Assembly (NCBI GenBank): GCA_010909165.1
Contig: MU008151.1
Location: 1-64,000 of the forward strand
Direction: 5' to 3'
Length of the DNA: 64,000 bases
DNA from: Anthoceros angustus
Taxonomy: Eukaryota > Plantae > Anthocerotophyta
The position numbers were made by a program, and so were the translations under genes. Positions 2,974-25,274 of this stretch are shown one piece after another. Every line of letters begins with the position of its first letter. Position 1 is the first letter of the stretch. The notes beneath the pieces are model-generated. The model ran no database searches. It was not told where the DNA came from and saw nothing but the letters and a program-made list of their open reading frames with translations.

Positions 2974-4641
2974 ATGGCTTCGTGCAGGAGCAGGGCGGCT
3001 CTGGCCGTGCTGGCCGTGGCCGCCTTCCTATCCTGCGCCTCCGCTACCAACTACACCGCCGGGGACCAGTATGGCTGGAGGCGGCCTCCCGCAAACAACC
3101 CCGGCTACTTCGCCCAGTGGAGTGCCAAGTATACCTTCTACCTCACCGACTTGATCAGTAAGTCGACATCTCCAATGCCATGCCGAATCTGCTGTTGCTA
3201 GGAATGTGAGAGGGAGGGTTTGTATGCTCGTGGCTTGCGTGTGTGGTTATGGGTGCATTGTGATGAGATGTGTATGTGACGTTGTGGGTGTGCTGTGGTG
3301 AAATGCTGCAGGATTCGACAGCCAAGGAGCCAACAGCAATGTGGTGAACATCGGGGCCTCGGAGTACCAGGTGTGCAACACATCGGATCCCGGAGGCCAG
3401 TACACCTTCCCGACCCCCGTCACCTTCAGGTTTCCGGAAGTCGGGGACTACTACTTCGCCAGCGGCATACCCGGGGACTGCCTGGCGGGGCTGAAGGTGA
3501 AGATCACCATCTCGCCCTCGTCGGGCGGTGCTGCGCCTCCACCGGGGAGCGCTTCCCCGCCGCCCATATCCGAGCCTGTGCCTTCCCTGTCTTCCAGCGG
3601 CGGGGCAGCTCCACCTCCCCGCCTTCCAGCAGCGGACACCTGCTCCGCCTAGCGGCGGCGGCAGCAGCAACTGGTTCTACGTCGGAGGACAGGACGTGGG
3701 ATGGACCATTCCGCCCTCCGCCAGCTACTACACCGACTGGGCGGATTCCGTGGCCCCGCTCTACGTGGACACGGATCGGTTGGGTGAGCGCCGTGTCCAT
3801 GTCCTCAATCAGGGTTGTGATTGCTTGGCCGCTTCCTTGACATCGCACTGTTTCTCACTCTGGGGATTCGTGGCTGTGGCAGTGTTCGTCTACGACAACG
3901 TCACCCACGATGTGGCTCTGCTGAACGCCTTGTCCTACCGCTCCTGCGACACCAGCAGGCCACTCGTCAACTTCACGACCGGGGAGGATGTCCTGGGCCC
4001 GAAACTGGCTAGCGTCTTCTACTTCAGCAGCTCCCATCCCGGTGACTGCACTGCCGGAATGCGCTTCAGCATCCAGTACGTTCCGGGATCTCGGCCTACG
4101 GGTGGCAACCTCCCCTCCCCGCCTGTGGGTGGCACCCGCCATGACCGCCCCCGGATTCTTCCTGCCGCCTCCTGTCGCCCCTGTAACCAGTCCTCCTGCT
4201 GCTCCTCCTACCTCCGGTGTCCCACCCCTTCCGTTCCGATCACTCCTCCCACTTCCTCACCACCTCCGCCTTCCGTCCCTTCTTCTGCCCCCTCACTGTC
4301 CCCCCTACAGTGCCTCCCACTGTCCCTCCGACATCCTCTCCCCGCATCTCCACCGACCTCGTTGTCCCCCTCCTTTGGCTGCCTTCCCTCCCCCCGCCTC
4401 TTGTGAGGGCCCTCCTCCCCCGCCTCCTCCGAGGACCCCTCCTCCTCCTCCTGCAGGTTTCCTACCTCCAGGACTAGTTTTGCCTCCAGGACTGGGTATC
4501 CCCCCAGGAGTGACCGCTCCTCCAGGGATTAGCGCGCCTCCGGGCCTTTTGAGCCCTCCTAGTGCGGCAATTTCGGGTGCAAGGGTGGGAACCCTCCTCC
4601 TCCTTGCTGCCCTCGGTTTGTCTTTGTTGGTGCTCACCTGA
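2974..4641 (+). CDS. Two-domain phytocyanin/ENODL-like chimeric arabinogalactan protein with signal peptide and GPI-type tail; reading frame broken by several indels in C-runs
   Basis: Exons 2974-3157, 3312-3783, 3883-4641, with phase-1 introns at the canonical phytocyanin position. Signal peptide MASCRSRAALAVLAVAAFLSCASA. Domain 1 NYTAGDQYGW...YYFASGIPGDCLAGLKV; domain 2 FYVGGQDVGW...THDV...YFSSSHPGDCTAGMRF. Pro/Ser/Thr-rich stalk and hydrophobic end TLLLLAALGLSLLVLT*. About 5 frame switches between 3617 and 4400. Confidence 0.85.
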
Positions 4642-5210
4642 TGACGGCGCAACAGTGGACATATGTTCTTGGAGCTGCCATCATCTTCAGCGCTCCCTCA
4701 GCTAAGTATTAGTTTCTCGAAGGCCAGAAGCTCTAGCATCATTGTCACATTTCTGTATTATTTGCTCCGTCTACCCTCGAAGGTTGGATTCATTGCAGCA
4801 ACCCCTAGTGTCACTGCCATTTTGTTTATCGCTTGATTTGTCGACCAGCGAACAATGGCTTCCTAGCCGTGAGAAATGTATCGTCCGCCAGGAAAAATGC
4901 ATCCAAGACCCTTCTGTCAGATTGACCACGATGGTTGAAGAAATTTGCCACAATCTATGGAAGCGACCACCTCATTTCGGAGGTGAAAATATTGCAGGTT
5001 CTAACAAACGTGCCGCGGTTTCGGTACTGTTGCGAATACGCATGTACATACATAGCATTCGGCTATGTAGCGAAGATTTTCAGCAACAACGATCTTCCGT
5101 TGGAATACACATTTGAGATGTGGCACATGACTGACTGAATTCACCCCAAGTCATGGTAGACAAGTCTGTCAAAAACTCATCAACAAACAACCCTTCTCAA
5201 CCAGCACCGC

Positions 5211-7815
5211 TTATCTGGGCTGATACATGGAAGGTGAGGCTTCAGAAGGGGAGTTATTGACAGAGCTGTTTACCACGCTGTTGGATTCCTCAGACACCCC
5301 AGTCTCCAGATCAGATGTGTGTGACTCGGGGGCACACAAATCTGTGTCATAGTTCAGAGGGCTCAAGTCCAAATTTTTCACCTTGTCCGAGTACCTGCAT
5401 TCTCGAGAGCTCAGCTTGATCCTCACAACTTCTTCCACTGCGTCCTTCATGGTGGGTCGCTCGTCTCGGAGGTGGGCCAGGCACACCAGTGCCAAGTCAG
5501 CCAGCTGCTGGACCTCCTCGAGGGCTTCCACATCTTGGCTGAGGTTGAGGCAAGGATCTACGATGTCCTCCAAGGACCCTCCGCGGATGAAGGGGATGCA
5601 GAAGGCAGCCAGATTCACCTGGGGAGTTCTCTGCCAGTCTACAGCCTTCTGTCCTGTGATCAACTCCAGTAGCACCACCCCAAAGCTGTACACATCGCTT
5701 TTATCCGTCAGCTGGCCAGTTGCATGGTACTCCGGATCGATGTAGCCGAAGGTGCCCATTGCTGCTGTGGAGACGTGGGTGGCATCCATGGGCACCAGGC
5801 GTGAGATGCCGAAATCGGCCACTTTGGCACGGCACTTCTCGTCCAGCAAGATATTGGAAGACTTCACATCCCGGTGGTAGATGGGAGTTTTGGCAGCAGA
5901 GTGAAGATATGCCAGAGCTTCCGCTGTCTCCAGTGCAATCTCCAGCCTCTTGCGCCAGCTAGCGAGAGCTCGGCCCTTCTTACCTTGGAGGTGCTCCAGG
6001 AGAGTTCCGTTGGGCACGTATTCGTACACCAGAATGGGGACTTCACACTCGATGCAGCATCCCACGAGACGGACCAAGTGGCGATGGTTGACGCTGGAAA
6101 GAATGGTCACCTCGTTCAGGAAGTAGGCTGAGAAGTCCTGTACTGGAGTCAGCTGCGGTTTGATCCTCTTGATGGCCACAACGTCTCCATCCGAAAGGGT
6201 TCCCTTGTACACCGTCCCAAAGGCTCCGCTGCCAATCTCAAGCTCCGGCGAGAAGTTTCTAGTGGCCTTGTTGATCTGCTTCAGAGTGTACGAAACAAAG
6301 CTTTCCTGAGAAGAGACACCGCTCAACTGCGAAATAGACAGCTTGCCACTCCGGGCAATAGTGGCCGATGGCTGGCGCCTTCTCCAGACGTAGAAGATGG
6401 CCAACGTCTTGAGTGCTGCTACCACAAGAATGGCTGGAACAATTATCCCTGCAAGCTCCCACATTGTACGGCACATCACAACCCGCTTGAATATCCCGTG
6501 ACAGTATACAGATTCCACCAAATTAGCCCAACTCGGCTTCATTGAAGAGCTAGCTTACCAAGCACCAGCCATATGGAGACGTGATTCTGTGAAGCAGCAT
6601 GCAGGATGCAGGCAACTCCACCACAATTCTGATCTGCATGCCCACATAGTTGCTGTGTCAGACATTGCCATTCAGGCGTGTCGTCGTCTCTGGCCCACTT
6701 GAATTGCACTGGGTGTCGTTACCTGGTGAAGCAAGAGGGGTTGGTGACACTTCTGGCAATCCTGCTGTTTCGGAAAGAGACACCGTCACTCCAAATTTCA
6801 TTCCCTGCTCACAGTGCCCTGGTTTCCCACAGATGAACCAAAAGCTCCCAGAGTCCAACAACTTGATTGTGGGATTCGCGAGATTGTATGCTGAAAGGAA
6901 GGTGGAGACGTTGCACGCTTGGTAAGCCGCTTGGCTCACCTGCAGTACCGTGTGCCTTCCTTGGTCAAACCCAAAATCTGCAGTGAGACGTTCCCACGAG
7001 GGCACATGAGTTCAATCGGCTTCCATCATCCCCCAAATTGCAAAACAGGCTCTAGGTGAACGCCAGTGCTAGGCCACTCACATAGACTGTCATAGACAGT
7101 GAAGCTCTTCCCTAGAACCCAAGAATCGTTATAGAAACCAGGGTAAGGCGGAAGCTCCCATCCAAATGTATCTCCTACAGAAAAATGCCTGCCCACAGGT
7201 GGAAGCGACGCTTCCGGGCTAGGAGCACTCCCAGGCGACGAAACAGAGTCGCCCGGATTAGGCGCAAACGCAGGCAGCGGGGCAGACGCGGGGGCAAGCG
7301 GCCTCGGAGGATGCAGATGAAACGAAAAGCGCATTCCTTCTCGGCAGTCTGCAATGTCCGCACTTATAAAGCTGACGGTGTCGTTGTCCGCTGGGAAGCC
7401 AGTGAACTGAAGCACAACATTATTCGGATACTGCAGCACAAGGTAAGGGTCCGATGCGTTGCAGTCCAGGTAGCCAAGTCTTCCGACCTGCACCACATTG
7501 TGCTTGCTGGCGTCGAAGCTAAAAACTGCACAGCGCAAGGAAGAAGAAATCTACATGGTCACTCGCACAAACTCCCACATCTGCAATTGCTGCAACAACC
7601 ATTCCAGCACCATACAGCGACTGACCCAGATAATCTCCGGCAAAAAAGTTGCGTTCCGATGCCCACTCATCGTAGAAGCTCTCCGACGGGGGCACACCCC
7701 ACCCATACCTTTCCCCCACATCATACAGCATCTGCCCCTCCACCTCCACTCCAAAACGATGCACAATCCATACTAAAAAACCCACCAGCACCGCCGATCC
7801 AGCCCACGGACGCAT
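5211..7815 (-). CDS. Receptor-like kinase with two phytocyanin ectodomains and a WAK-like RD kinase (737 aa)
   Basis: Exons 7815-7626, 7525-7082, 6977-6664, 6586-6559, 6448-5211 with GT-AG ends total 2214 nt and are open. Signal peptide, two plastocyanin-like domains separated by an Ala/Pro linker, TM helix VSIWLVLGIIVPAILVVAALKTLAIFYVW then RRR. Kinase motifs GSGAFG, VAIK, HRDVKSSN, DFG, GTFGYIDPEY. Confidence 0.9.
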
Positions 7816-9533
7816 CTTCCGGGACCTTCAGTCGCCTCCCACTCTCGCTCCTCCTGACGAAGGTGTCTCGGAATTCCAAATCCTCCTCATCTCCGCAGCC
7901 CGGAGCTGAACCTTGCATGCCGCACCCTCACAGGGCGGTAATACTGGACAACAAAACTTGTGCGAGGAAGAGCTGTGTGACATCCATTCCACTTCCTCCA
8001 GCCATCCATCGGAATTCCTTCCCCACACACTTTTTCAAATTTGTAACCAAAAGCTCTCCCCCAACGCCCCTCCGAACCCCTCGCACAACAGAGATGAGTC
8101 CTGTGCCCGAAAGCTAAGCTGATAAAAATCGGGGTGGGAGAAAGAAGGCTGGAGGCAGTGGAGGACAGATGTATGATGTACCAGCCTGCATGAACAGGCT
8201 TTGCACGCCCCAGAGACAATCATGCCTACATAGCCCAAAGCCGCATCTGACGTAGAAGTGTGAGGAAAAGCGGGCCCAGGTGTTCCGCAGCAGACGGGCA
8301 CGCCAGGCACAAAAATCTGCACCCGGCATCAACCAGGAAGCAACAGCTGTGTGATATCCACCCGCTGCCCTCACCACCTGTTGCAGCGGACAGGGGTGGC
8401 TCTGCCAACCTGCAACTTGCTTTGCTCAAAAAAGGCGGTGAAGCTCGGCACCAGCTCTGCCTAACAGGTTGTCTAGTCTACCAACTGCCATGGCGATTCC
8501 CGCTCTGGTGTTGCACATCCTTTCCGGTGTCCAGGTGTGCGCGTTTGAGCGGAGGCCGCACGTCGCTCCTCCACTGCCCACCAACCCTTACCGTTGCTTG
8601 GGCGCGGTGGGAAAAGGGAGCCGGTAACGGAACAATAACACTAACAGTGACAGTAACAGTAACAATAACAGGGACCTGCAAAGTGCAAACCCACGAACGA
8701 CAGCATGTCAGGTTTGAAGCGGGGCCTGACGACTCGACCAGCTGCCGTCAGTTCAGTACATAAATGCCCATGATTGCCATGGACGTCGAGCCAATGGCCG
8801 TCGCCTGTCGTGACTGCCGACTTCCCCCGCGTGCCCCCTTCGGCCGCATTATTTATTGTTACATATGTGCAGGTTGTTTTTCAATTTCTTTTCCCGAGGA
8901 CGATTGCAACACGTGTCCTTGAGGTACCTACTAGCTTTGATGGCGGACGCTGCTGGGCACGACGGTGATGGCCTCTGTGTGGGAGGTAGGGCACTCGTAC
9001 AGTACACCAACTAAACCAGCACACATATGTACATACAGTATGTACAGGCAGGCAGTACAAGATACACTTCTCTTGGGCATACAGTACATGTGTGCGGCTG
9101 TTGTGAAACAACGACCCAACGTATGTACGTGGGACAGCAACCCAACGTGCAAGATATGCACAAGAGTGCCTCCAGGAAACCAGCTTATTCGTAAGGAACA
9201 TTCTCTTGGTGAGATGCTGCGTGTTGGTTGTGTGCAGCTGGTTGAGAAAACTTTGATTTGACATGTTGGGGTGGAATGCATCCAAATGTACATATCTTGG
9301 AAGGCCCAGCGTGTCACAGGACACAGGATGTCCCTCTTGCCTGGTCTGGAATCCTGGATTCGTAAAGAACCTTGCACGTGTGGAGATCGTGGAAAAGAGA
9401 CCCACCGCAAAAGAGACAAGGCTGTCTTGCTGGGATCGTACACGCACAGGGGCCTCAATTAATTCCGTTTCCGATGTTTATCAAGTACTTTGTGAGCTGC
9501 GTACAGCTTGGGCCATAGTATGGCATGCCGTTT

Positions 9534-16142: not shown

Positions 16143-16904
16143 CTAGGGTGCCCTTCTGACAAACAGACGCAACTTCTTGCCTTTCTCCTGTTTCTCCCTC
16201 TTGGTCACTTCTTTTGGGGTATCCTTCTGCTTTTCTTCCTTGTCCTTCTTTTCTGCTTTGTCCCTCTTCTCTTGTTTCTCCTTCTCCTTCTCTAGCTTCT
16301 TCGTCTCCTTCTCTAGTGTCTCCCTCTCCTTCTGTGTCAGCTCTTTGGGTTCGTCCTTCTTCTTTGCTGCCTTGTCCTTCTTCTCTTGCTTCTCCTTCTC
16401 CTTCTCTAGCTTCTTCTTCTCCTTCTCTAGTGTTTCCCTCTCCTTCTTTGTCAGCTCTTTGGGTTCGTCCTTCTTCTTTGCTGCCTTGTCCTTCTTCTCT
16501 TGCTTCTCCTTGTCTTTCTCTAGCTTCTCCTTCTCCTCCTCTAGCTTCTTCTTCTCTTTCTCTAGCTTCTCCTTCTCCGTCTCTAGCTTCTTCTTCTCCT
16601 TCTCAAGTGTGTCCCTATCCTTCTTTGTCAGCTCTTTGGACTCGTCCTTCTTCTTTGCTGCCTTGTCGTCCTTCTTCACTTCTTTGTGCTCCTTCCCTGC
16701 TTTGTTCTCCTTCTCCGCTTTCTCCTCTTGCTTGGACTTCTTTTCCTCCTTCGGCTTCTTCTCCTCCTTCTTAGACTTCTCCTCCTCCTTGGACTTCTTC
16801 TCCTTCTTCGACTTCTTTTCTTCCTTGGCTGGTTTGGCAGTCACCTTCGGATCACCCACTCCGTCTGAAGTCTTGACAAGCAAAATTTTGTATCCAAAAC
16901 ACAT
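16143..16904 (-). CDS. Lys/Glu-rich repeat ORF of unknown function
   Basis: 253-codon ORF with about 3 copies of a 38-aa unit KDKAAKKKDEPKELTKKERETLEKEKKKLEKEKEKQEK plus heptad EKEKKKL repeats. May be the last exon of an upstream chimeric gene. Confidence 0.45.
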   Translation of the reverse strand: MCFGYKILLVKTSDGVGDPKVTAKPAKEEKKSKKEKKSKEEEKSKKEEKKPKEEKKSKQEEKAEKENKAGKEHKEVKKDDKAAKKKDESKELTKKDRDTLEKEKKKLETEKEKLEKEKKKLEEEKEKLEKDKEKQEKKDKAAKKKDEPKELTKKERETLEKEKKKLEKEKEKQEKKDKAAKKKDEPKELTQKERETLEKETKKLEKEKEKQEKRDKAEKKDKEEKQKDTPKEVTKREKQEKGKKLRLFVRRAP

Positions 16905-23911: not shown

Positions 23912-25274
23912 ATGGAGTTGGTTGCAGCTGCAACGTGGTGGACCGTTCTGGCAGTCTTGTTGTTGGGGAGTGCTTCCTCCTGCGGTGCCGCCGTGAACAG
24001 CAGCAATGTGGGCAGCCTTGCGTGGCCTGGCCCGTTGGATATCCTCAACGTCGGGGGAACGTACGGCTGGAACATCCCGCCCAACGGGACCTTCTTCACC
24101 GAGTGGGCGGATGGGAGCATGCCGGACGCTGCAATTGGGAATGTGTTAGGTCGGAGCTCTTGTCCTGCTAGCCTGAGTTTGGGTTTACAGCACACCTCCT
24201 GCTTGCCTCACTGAGGCGCCGTTGCCACAGTCTTCAGGTCCAATCCAGGCTCCAACAGTAGCGTCGTTGTCTTCACCACCAGTGACCCGTCCGTAACCGC
24301 TCAAAACATATGCCAGAACAAGAATGTGGCAGGGTCCTCTTGGGGGACCAACCATTTCACGACTCAAGTCAGCCTCATCTTGCTCAAGGCTGGGGTCACG
24401 TACTGGTTTGTGTCAGGGTATGGAGGGGACTGTGAGGCTGGGATGGCCTTCAAGGTCACGGTGAGTCAGGGATCTGTTCCTGATGTCACACAGAGGGATG
24501 TTGGCGTGGCCTACAATGTGGAGTATTCTGATACCAGTGGGGCGAAGGTTTCTGGCTTCGGCTCTTTGATAGCACACCAGCCTGCATCATTTGACAACTC
24601 GTCTGCCAATGCAGGGAGGTATTTCAACGGAGATGCCTTGAGTAAGTAGATTTGTCTCCAACAAGCTTCAGCTCTGAGTTGCAGGGGCCGGTTTAACATG
24701 ACGTGAATTATGGTCGTTTCTGTACTCCAGATATCGCTTTCTTTGAGTACAACAAACTGTTTGTGAGTGCAAAATCGGGGGGTGAGGCCTCCTGCCAGAA
24801 TTTTGATACACAGATTTCTCTTGGCGGTGGACTCTCCACGAATTCCTCCAACAATTTGCTGTATCTGAGTGTGTTCCTTAGAGTATCCGATGGTGATCAC
24901 TACTCCTACTTCTTGTCGGCCACCGATAACTGCGATCAAGGGATCAAAATAGTAGACCTCTCCATCCGAAAAACGTCCGCTGCAGGTCAGAGCTTCTCAA
25001 ACTAGGCGGGAGCATAGATGTTTCTACCAGCCCTGCTTACAGGTGTCACTCCCTCAATGGGTGCAGGTACTTGTTCCGAGAATCCAGGATCGCCGTACAT
25101 CTGTTCACATGCAAGCACAATTTCAGGTTCGGCTGACACTGTCTTCCAATATGATATGAACATGCATGTTTCTTACCTGTTCAGTAAAGAAAAGGGTGGT
25201 GGCTTGCAGGTTACAAACTGCTGATCGGCTCTTCCTTTCTCTTCGTTATTCATCTTTTTGTGGTGTGCTTATGA
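23912..25274 (+). CDS. Phytocyanin domain fused to an unrecognised domain, GPI-type tail (paralog B, 350 aa)
   Basis: Exons 23912-24149, 24231-24641, 24731-24985, 25043-25126, 25210-25274 total 1053 nt and are open, with the same intron phases as paralog A. LNVGGTYGW...GNVL|VF, YWFVSGYGGDCEAGMAF, RDVGVAYNV...GFGSL...YFNGDAL, TCSENPGSPYIC, hydrophobic end LLIGSSFLFVIHLFVVCL*. Confidence 0.82.

Follow-up and report, generated by a model that had tools for sequence, protein, structure and literature searches.

Gene structure and transcript support

The window, that is, the whole stretch of 64,000 nucleotides of the Anthoceros angustus contig MU008151.1 that was analysed, carries on its minus strand a receptor-like kinase (RLK) gene of five exons, and beside it a convergent gene that also codes for phytocyanin domains (Table 1). 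The reading frame of the RLK gene is intact, as the preliminary description had it, and all four of its introns run from GT to AG and lie in phase 1. The coding sequence is GC-rich, and the introns are around 100 nt long (100, 104, 89, and 110 nt). In RNA contigs of two sister species, X2 (organism B) and X6 (organism C), which are about 94% identical to the locus, we found all four joints at exactly the predicted positions. An RNA contig of A. angustus itself (X1), which matches the genome with 0 mismatches, has the last three joints as predicted and differs in intron 1, where it joins 7525|7786; the joint 7525|7626, which marks the end of exon 1 in organisms B and C, is absent from the own-species RNA contigs. 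The joints on both sides of the 75-nt exon 4, 6633|6723 and 6448|6559, are present in X1, X2, and X6, and they replace a junction at 6664 that had been proposed earlier and does not exist. The RNA contigs extend over the 3′ ends of both the RLK gene and its neighbor.

The differences from organisms B and C point to purifying selection on the kinase, since among the 40 of 164 differences listed the kinase holds 15 synonymous and 5 non-synonymous substitutions out of 20, the latter mostly conservative, while the tail has 8 of each. A search of the NCBI proteins with the kinase exon returned no near-identical protein.

Table 1. Features of the RLK locus, with positions in the window, and accessions of related proteins
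Feature	Positions	Strand	Description
RLK gene	7815..5211	−	Five exons; 733 aa, one stop, terminal
Exon 1	7626..7815	−	Start codon at 7815; codes for the signal peptide (residues ~1-27) and the first third of phytocyanin domain 1 (D1); ends in phase 1
Exon 2	7082..7525	−	Phase 1-1; remaining two thirds of D1, linker 136-175, first third of domain 2 (D2)
Exon 3	6723..6977	−	Phase 1-1; remaining two thirds of D2, all four copper ligand codons, disulfide cysteines, Ser/Pro stalk
Exon 4	6559..6633	−	75 nt, phase 1-1; encodes DQNCGGVACILHAASQNHVSIWLVL, Cys-containing juxtamembrane stalk and N-terminal part of the transmembrane segment
Exon 5	5211..6448	−	Rest of the transmembrane segment, RRRQ stop-transfer, juxtamembrane region, RD kinase, Ser-rich tail, stop at 5213-5211
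Alternative 5′ donor	7785..7786	−	Exon ends at 7786, followed by GTGGGT; used by X1, skips 7785..7526
Convergent neighbor gene	2974..4641	+	Signal peptide, two ENODL-type phytocyanin domains, Pro-rich region, hydrophobic GPI-like tail
Cu_bind_like RLK relatives			Adiantum nelumboides MCO5591003.1; A. capillus-veneris GOP47_0021510; Physcomitrium patens XP_073395867.1; Ceratodon purpureus M758_5G193500

A tandem phytocyanin ectodomain with one complete copper ligand set

The ectodomain had been described as a signal peptide followed by two phytocyanin domains and one transmembrane helix, and this layout was borne out by Pfam, by domain alignment, and by hydrophobicity. The Pfam family Cu_bind_like (PF02298) matches the exon-2 piece, which covers D1, with E 1.7e-4 (22 bits against a gathering cutoff of 20.8), and the exon-3 piece, which covers D2, with E 2.8e-13. 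Strongly hydrophobic 19-residue windows occur only in the h-region of the signal peptide and in the segment 315-343, which is followed by RRRQ. D1 is divergent, and a search of the PDB with its exon-2 part alone gave no match; over both domains together, the ectodomain aligns to a Nelumbo tandem blue copper protein (P0121) with E 2e-30. An intron at the same position and in phase 1 splits both domains (GDYL|VFSF at residue 63.3 and YDSL|YFGF at residue 211.3), which agrees with the earlier remark that both carry the intron typical of the family; the phytocyanin RLK of Physcomitrium has the matching intron at DDII|EFNF.

The two domains differ at the copper site. By domain alignment, the ligand positions of D1 are occupied by H72, S118, D123, and M128, so that two of the four ligands are gone and D1 has no copper site, a loss of the kind known from ENODLs. 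Assigned residue by residue against mavicyanin (1WS7), cucumber basic protein (2CBP), and plantacyanin (1F56), the ligand set of the membrane-proximal D2 is complete, with His220 (6954-6952), Cys261 (6831-6829), His266 (6816-6814), and Met271 (6801-6799) in the canonical Cys-x4-His-x4-Met spacing and in the His-Cys-His-Met order of cucumber basic protein and plantacyanin. Both domains have the phytocyanin disulfide cysteines. Judged by these residues, D2 is a cupredoxin of the plantacyanin/uclacyanin type and D1 one of the ENODL type, and D2 probably binds a type-1 copper ion. The composition of the D1-D2 linker (136-175) is rich in Pro, Ala, and Ser and resembles that of arabinogalactan proteins (AGPs); linkers of this kind bear arabinogalactan glycans in chimeric AGPs. 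In all these features the ectodomain resembles known phytocyanins, but those are small and secreted or GPI-anchored, while the Anthoceros module is tethered to a kinase by a transmembrane helix.

The kinase belongs to the WAK/WAKL clade

Exon 5 matches Pfam Pkinase and PK_Tyr_Ser-Thr with E of about 1e-45. The kinase, at residues ~392-661, contains the Gly loop GSGAFG at 394, VAIK with K415 (6170-6168), HRD at 513-515 (D515 at 5870-5868), DFG at 533, and the APE-type motif DPE at 559; with every one of these motifs in place, it is predicted to be the catalytically complete RD kinase that had been proposed. The kinase had also been called WAK-type, with its placement left to a phylogeny, and in the tree that we ran it falls inside the WAK/WAKL clade with support of 94/92 against outgroup kinases auto-named as PERK, PBL, LRR-RLK, lectin-RLK, and CrRLK1L-type. 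By identity, its nearest kinases are MpRLK-Pelle_WAK_LRK10L-8 of Marchantia (61%) and WAKL20 of Selaginella (60-62%).

The gene shares further features with WAKs and WAKLs (RLK-Pelle_WAK and WAK_LRK10L). The kinase carries the GCCIE..PILVYEY signature, and relatives are auto-annotated as WAKL14, WAKL16, or WAKL20. We compared gene structures with loci of Physcomitrium and Sphagnum jensenii, and in each gene the N-terminal part of the transmembrane segment is interrupted by a phase-1 intron, after which a single exon encodes the rest of that segment and the kinase: the intron lies at VSIWLVL|G in the Anthoceros RLK, at NLLLVA|G in a Sphagnum WAK with GUB_WAK and EGF domains (L002), and at TAIIA|V in the phytocyanin RLK of Physcomitrium. 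The ectodomain sets the Anthoceros protein apart from WAKs, as it consists of two cupredoxin domains with no GUB_WAK_bind and no recognizable EGF domain; neither gave a Pfam match in any ectodomain exon. At the place of the EGF exon, the Anthoceros gene has only the 25-codon exon 4, starting with DQNC, which matches the EGF exon of L002 in position and phase and may, as an inference, be its relic. On present sequence evidence, the Anthoceros protein is thus a WAK-clade kinase and not a canonical WAK.

Phytocyanin RLKs in ferns and mosses

Proteins with the same architecture occur in other non-seed plants. A two-domain protein of Adiantum (P0253) is collinear with the Anthoceros RLK over 717 columns (E 8e-104), and a second two-domain relative was found in the same genus (P0265). 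The relatives in Physcomitrium and Ceratodon (P0108, P0117, and P0259) have one phytocyanin domain, which aligns with D2 of the Anthoceros RLK. All share with the Anthoceros protein the signal peptide, the phytocyanin domain or domains, the transmembrane helix, and the WAK-like kinase, but none of the fern and moss relatives found keeps the full copper ligand set, which occurs only in D2 of the Anthoceros RLK. Copper is evidently dispensable for such receptors in other lineages, since all the relatives found have lost the ligands. A profile search with the D2, transmembrane, and kinase regions was swamped by multi-kinase proteins, and its only new relative was P0253; three candidates whose match to the profile started early (P0136, P0225, and P0127) were rejected, as they proved to be GUB_WAK or lectin RLKs. 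Region-restricted word searches with the moss and fern ectodomains return very close relatives only and say little about the wider distribution.

Whether these genes descend from one fusion was addressed with AU tests on the kinase tree, whose backbone is poorly supported and in which the Adiantum branch is long: a single clade of all members gave p = 0.013, Anthoceros with the fern gave p = 0.085, and Anthoceros with the moss p = 0.10. The Anthoceros ectodomain is nearer to the generic tandem phytocyanin of Nelumbo (105 bits) than to the ectodomains of the fern and moss RLKs (63 and 42 bits). Independent fusions are therefore possible, given that the AU tests do not favor a single clade and that the Nelumbo match exceeds those to the fern and moss proteins.

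In the literature that we searched we found no characterized phytocyanin RLK. The metaRLK preprint (10.1101/2023.12.21.572927) lists Cu_bind_like, as a “pECD” class, with the RLK ectodomains that had gone unreported before. The Anthoceros protein has the features of this class, namely a signal peptide, Cu_bind_like, one transmembrane segment, and an RLK/Pelle kinase on one transcript, the last from RNA of the sister species. The preliminary description had not recognized the architecture as that of a characterized family, and had asked whether it might be an already described, widespread subfamily. The answer is in part yes: in the literature searched it is characterized nowhere, but neither is it a one-off, as it is present in several lineages (Adiantum, Physcomitrium, and Ceratodon) and catalogued in the preprint. 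The Anthoceros gene belongs to a small, uncharacterized set of RLKs with phytocyanin ectodomains in non-seed land plants, and its architecture is unusual, not unique.

The neighboring double phytocyanin gene

Both pieces of the neighbor match Pfam Cu_bind_like, with the ligand positions changed (Cys to Ser and His to Asp). We considered this gene as a recent donor or duplicate of the RLK ectodomain and rejected it, because the two are only 26-34% identical and do not align collinearly.

Discussion

We regard the gene as, very probably, that of a genuine type-I RLK of the WAK/WAKL clade in which the GUB_WAK/EGF ectodomain was swapped for a tandem phytocyanin by recombination in phase-1 introns. 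The alternative is that two neighboring genes, one for a secreted tandem phytocyanin and one for a WAK-like kinase, have been joined by read-through or misassembly. It draws on the rarity of the architecture only, and we consider its probability negligible: single RNA contigs from three species join the ectodomain exons in frame, by phase-1 splices, to the transmembrane and kinase exons, which effectively refutes it; moreover, no stop codon or polyadenylation-type break separates the two parts, and the annotations of Adiantum and mosses contain collinear proteins. The earlier view of a fusion as opposed to a chance juxtaposition is upheld by the same contigs. Exon shuffling, which had been proposed as its origin, is plausible. 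All introns are in phase 1, and the addition of phytocyanin exons to a WAK scaffold fits because the intron in the transmembrane segment is common to this gene and the Sphagnum GUB_WAK/EGF WAK.

A different doubt concerns A. angustus itself, where the locus could be decaying or silenced by unproductive splicing, the dominant mRNA using the donor at 7786 and yielding no surface receptor. This splice is that of the sole own-species transcript contig, X1, which has the joint 7525|7786, no coverage over 7552-7675, and none of 14 words sampled from the body of exon 1 (7627-7785). The signal peptide is lost in this mRNA; the frame from the ATG at 7815 stops after 63 aa, a 714-aa frame without signal peptide opens at the ATG at 7918, and the long 5′ part of X1 holds nine upstream ATGs. 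A secreted isoform, that is, one with the signal peptide, is accordingly shown only in the sister species, since the own-species contig takes the donor at 7786. Nevertheless, we judge decay or silencing unlikely: the evidence comes from one small RNA run, and minor isoforms are lost in assembled contigs, while the genome keeps the canonical frame fully intact with both splice sites, the canonical donor is used in the sister species, and the substitution pattern points to purifying selection.

If the protein is a functional receptor of the WAK/WAKL clade, its ectodomain would lie in the wall or apoplast and there bind a wall glycan, a peptide, or another protein as partner, and engagement of the ligand would lead to trans-phosphorylation of the kinase. 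Such a receptor would resemble the GPI-anchored ENODLs that act with FERONIA, but with binder and kinase on one chain. ENODL14 and ENODL15 interact with FERONIA (PMC6726743). In both systems a surface protein of the phytocyanin fold is coupled to a receptor kinase, and a GPI-type double phytocyanin adjoins the Anthoceros RLK; the differences are that in Anthoceros a single polypeptide is involved and that the kinase is WAK-type, not CrRLK1L-type. The neighbor and the RLK might form a pair of a GPI protein and an RLK of the same fold, in the manner of LYM-CERK1 or TMM-ERECTA, although a co-receptor role for the neighbor seems doubtful to us.

A role in copper or redox sensing is speculation from sequence, and for copper binding itself the one piece of support is the D2 ligand set; the cell-wall or microbial ligand that the preliminary description named beside them is likewise a candidate input only. 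In such a role, the type-1 center of D2 would be the sensor, with apoplastic copper, or the Cu(I)/Cu(II) state as set by reactive oxygen species or ascorbate, shifting conformation or oligomerization and thereby switching the kinase. The four ligands, their spacing, and the disulfide are in place in D2, which sits next to the membrane, and the ligands were kept there though lost in D1, in the neighbor gene, and in every fern and moss relative found. Against this, any function that relatives of this architecture have is carried out without the ligands, and the rigid sites of cupredoxins hardly alter with redox state or metal loading. Owing to this rigidity, any copper held by D2 is likely to be structural or constitutive and not itself the sensed signal, and we think a copper or redox switch improbable. 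Still less probable, in our opinion, is the fullest version, a working copper-center RLK that would sense apoplastic copper or redox state directly, shuffled onto a WAK scaffold, perhaps as one of several independent fusions in non-seed plants and perhaps with the neighbor as co-receptor.

What the ectodomain recognizes defines a plant receptor kinase, and we know of no characterized one with a metalloprotein ectodomain. Phytocyanins and ENODLs, in turn, are abundant surface proteins whose biochemical roles are mostly obscure; to our knowledge, FERONIA is their sole link to signaling, and there the partners are separate polypeptides. The value of the Anthoceros gene is tempered by the presence of its architecture in databases and in one preprint, and by the absence of the secreted isoform from the own-species transcript contig. 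Nevertheless, phytocyanin and kinase are joined covalently by nature in this gene, which is evidence of a genetic kind that the fold is able to provide the input of a receptor, and with the copper site of D2 intact, the importance of copper or redox state can be approached directly. As relatives exist in Physcomitrium, a tractable model, the family of phytocyanin RLKs is testable.

Gene model and transcripts

All four introns of the five-exon receptor kinase (RLK) gene, whose exons are listed with the other features of the window in the table, are GT..AG introns of phase 1 and 89-110 nt each, and the spliced ORF encodes 733 aa with a single stop at its end. Pfam places a Cu_bind_like (phytocyanin) domain in the exon-2 piece (D1; E 1.7e-4, marginally over the gathering score), another in the exon-3 piece (the membrane-proximal D2; E 2.8e-13) and Pkinase/PK_Tyr_Ser-Thr in exon 5 (E ~1e-45). 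Hydropathy gives only two strongly hydrophobic stretches, the N-terminal signal-peptide core and residues 315-343, the latter directly followed by RRRQ. The kinase motif set is complete (GSGAFG, VAIK with K415, HRD at 513-515, DFG at 533, and DPE), the ectodomain has four N-glycosylation sequons, and the 41 residues between D1 and D2 (linker and flanks) contain 13 Pro, 7 Ala, 7 Ser and six AP/SP/TP dipeptides, a composition that marks the linker as a predicted arabinogalactan-glycomodule type.

We aligned four RNA runs to window 4700-8400. The sister species, organisms B and C, share 93-95% identity with the window and gave one spliced contig each, with joints (7525|7626, 6977|7082, 6631-6633|6721-6723 and 6447-6449|6558-6561) that match the model exactly, exon 4 included. 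These joints show that the double-phytocyanin RLK gene of the preliminary description is real; its junction at 6664 was misplaced, as the RNA joints there delimit the 75-nt exon 4.

Features of the receptor kinase gene and of the rest of the window
Feature	Position	Strand	Remarks
Exon 1	7815..7626	-	read and three-frame translation of 8000..5100
Exon 2	7525..7082	-	read and three-frame translation of 8000..5100
Exon 3	6977..6723	-	read and three-frame translation of 8000..5100
Exon 4	6633..6559	-	read and three-frame translation of 8000..5100
Exon 5	6448..5211	-	read and three-frame translation of 8000..5100
GPI-type double ENODL neighbour gene	2974-4641	+	convergent to RLK; same exon layout
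Weak phytocyanin-like match	24044-24466	+	tblastn, 27% to D2
253-aa ORF, Lys/Glu-rich repeats (EKEKKKLEKEKEKQEKKDKAAKKKDEPKELT...)	16143-16904	-	opposite strand reads as Ser/Phe-rich ORF

Origin and distribution of the fusion

The closest kinases belong to the WAK/WAKL group (Marchantia MpRLK-Pelle_WAK_LRK10L-8, 61% identity; Selaginella WAKL20, 60-62%), and maximum-likelihood trees place the window kinase inside that clade with support of 94/92 against the outgroups, the backbone within the clade being without resolution. We rebuilt the exon structures of a Physcomitrium RLK with a phytocyanin ectodomain (Cu-RLK; L001) and of a GUB_WAK/EGF-type WAK from Sphagnum (L002). The former keeps the canonical phytocyanin phase-1 intron and has another phase-1 intron within the N-terminal portion of the TM helix, after which TM and kinase share one exon; in the latter this TM intron is also present, behind an EGF exon of phase 1-1, and the last intron of the window RLK (VSIWLVL|G, phase 1) falls in the same place. 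Because all three share this intron, exons 4 and 5 resemble the 3' portion of a WAK gene, to which the phytocyanin exons would have been attached via phase-1 introns. The phase-1 TM intron common to the window RLK and the Sphagnum WAK thus favours exon shuffling, as originally proposed. The small, phase 1-1 exon 4 opens with DQNC, resembling the D-x-N-E-C with which calcium-binding EGF exons begin; in WAK genes an EGF exon occupies its slot, with DINKC in L002. As a hint from sequence, exon 4 may be a truncated EGF relic.

The architecture, which the preliminary description did not recognise as a characterised family, is not a one-off: relatives occur in mosses and Adiantum, and the metaRLK preprint (10.1101/2023.12.21.572927) has already catalogued Cu_bind_like among hitherto unreported RLK ectodomains. 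Ceratodon purpureus M758_5G193500 and its cluster relatives, which include Physcomitrium patens XP_073395867.1 (annotated WAKL16), have one Cu_bind_like domain and a kinase, and the moss phytocyanin domain, TM helix and kinase are collinear with those of the window from D2 onward (43% over 502 columns). An exhaustive profile search found two Cu_bind_like domains and a kinase in Adiantum nelumboides MCO5591003.1 (706 aa), collinear with the window protein across 717 columns (33% identity, E 8e-104). Adiantum capillus-veneris also has a copy (1057 aa); it carries two additional Pfam families, PF27073 and PF25431, which may reflect either merged gene models or an additional fusion. Constraining all Cu-RLK kinases to a single clade gave p = 0.013 in the AU test, against 0.085 for window plus fern and 0.10 for window plus moss, and the window ectodomain scores 105 bits with a generic Nelumbo phytocyanin, above the 63 bits it reaches with the fern and the 42 bits with the moss ectodomain. 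A Sphagnum balticum protein (457 aa) branches basally in the moss Cu-RLK kinase clade (support 100); its short, Ser/Thr-rich ectodomain gave no match in a search for Cu_bind_like, so the ectodomain has been gained or lost within this clade. The architecture is rare and uncharacterised, yet it is catalogued and occurs in three or more lineages of land plants. In its main text, the 2026 metaRLK 2.0 paper makes no mention of a Cu_bind_like RLK ectodomain, and our literature searches turned up no functional work on a phytocyanin-RLK.

The window seems to hold a cluster of phytocyanin genes. The product of the neighbour gene has a signal peptide, a pair of ENODL-type phytocyanin domains (motifs FASGIPGDC and FSSSHPGDC, with Ser for Cys and Asp for His), an extended Pro-rich region and a GPI-like tail that is hydrophobic. 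We rejected it as a recent ectodomain donor, its match to the RLK ectodomain being 26-34% identical and not collinear. The two stop codons lie ~570 nt apart, and since RNA contigs of three species extend from the RLK 3' end into the neighbour, an antisense overlap of the two 3' UTRs is probable.

Expression, copper site and function

Set against the joints of organisms B and C, an artefactual fusion is excluded in practice. Unproductive splicing or decay of the locus in the window's own species is a real, if rather unlikely, rival. Organism A, whose RNA has 0 mismatches to the window and is thus the same species, yielded a single contig of 3971 nt with the last three RLK joints, in which 7525 is joined to an alternative intron-1 donor at 7786; a second search found 0 of the sampled words of the exon-1 body (7627-7785) in this run. 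With this donor, translation from ATG 7815 yields 63 aa and translation from ATG 7918 a 714-aa protein without signal peptide, and the secreted isoform is demonstrated in the sister species only. Nevertheless, assembled contigs lose minor isoforms, so the absence of the canonical isoform from organism A is not established and it may still exist there. Among the classed subset of differences from organisms B and C, which covers the kinase domain and the C-terminal tail, the kinase domain has 15 synonymous changes and 5 mostly conservative replacements, and the tail 8 synonymous and 8 non-synonymous; nucleotide divergence is 5.4% in exon 5, 6.3% in exon 2 and 8.5-9% in exons 3 and 4. These classes and divergences point to a gene under constraint, most strongly in the kinase. 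Upstream of the 7786 donor the organism A contig also continues unspliced for 780 nt or more (window 7786-8400 and beyond, minus strand) with nine upstream ATGs; this part may represent a long 5' leader, point to a second promoter or belong to an overlapping transcript.

The exciting alternative of a true copper or redox sensor, one of the roles first suggested, we consider improbable. D2 aligns to mavicyanin 1WS7 (E 1e-11), cucumber basic protein 2CBP, plantacyanin 1F56 and stellacyanin 1JER, and alignment to the sequences of these structures gives His220, Cys261, His266 and Met271 at the four type-1 copper ligand positions, with Cys-x4-His-x4-Met spacing and the family disulfide cysteines present; D2 is probably loaded with copper. 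By its sequence D1 is divergent, with His72, Ser118, Asp123 and Met128 at the ligand positions, an ENODL-type loss of Cys and the second His; its exon-2 part alone has no PDB match, and the whole ectodomain aligns over both domains to a Nelumbo tandem blue copper protein (E 2e-30). The full ligand set was found in none of the moss and Adiantum Cu-RLK relatives, and the two-domain layout with a predicted intact type-1 copper site adjoining the membrane is distinctive of the window gene. We favour the ectodomain as a binding module, in which the copper of D2 would not be the sensor. ENODL14 and ENODL15 bind FERONIA directly, and pairs of a GPI-protein and an RLK that share a fold are known, for example LYM-CERK1 and TMM-ERECTA (PMC6726743). 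On the most likely reading, in which we have considerable confidence, the gene encodes a WAK-clade receptor kinase that works at the cell surface and whose ectodomain is a phytocyanin tandem.
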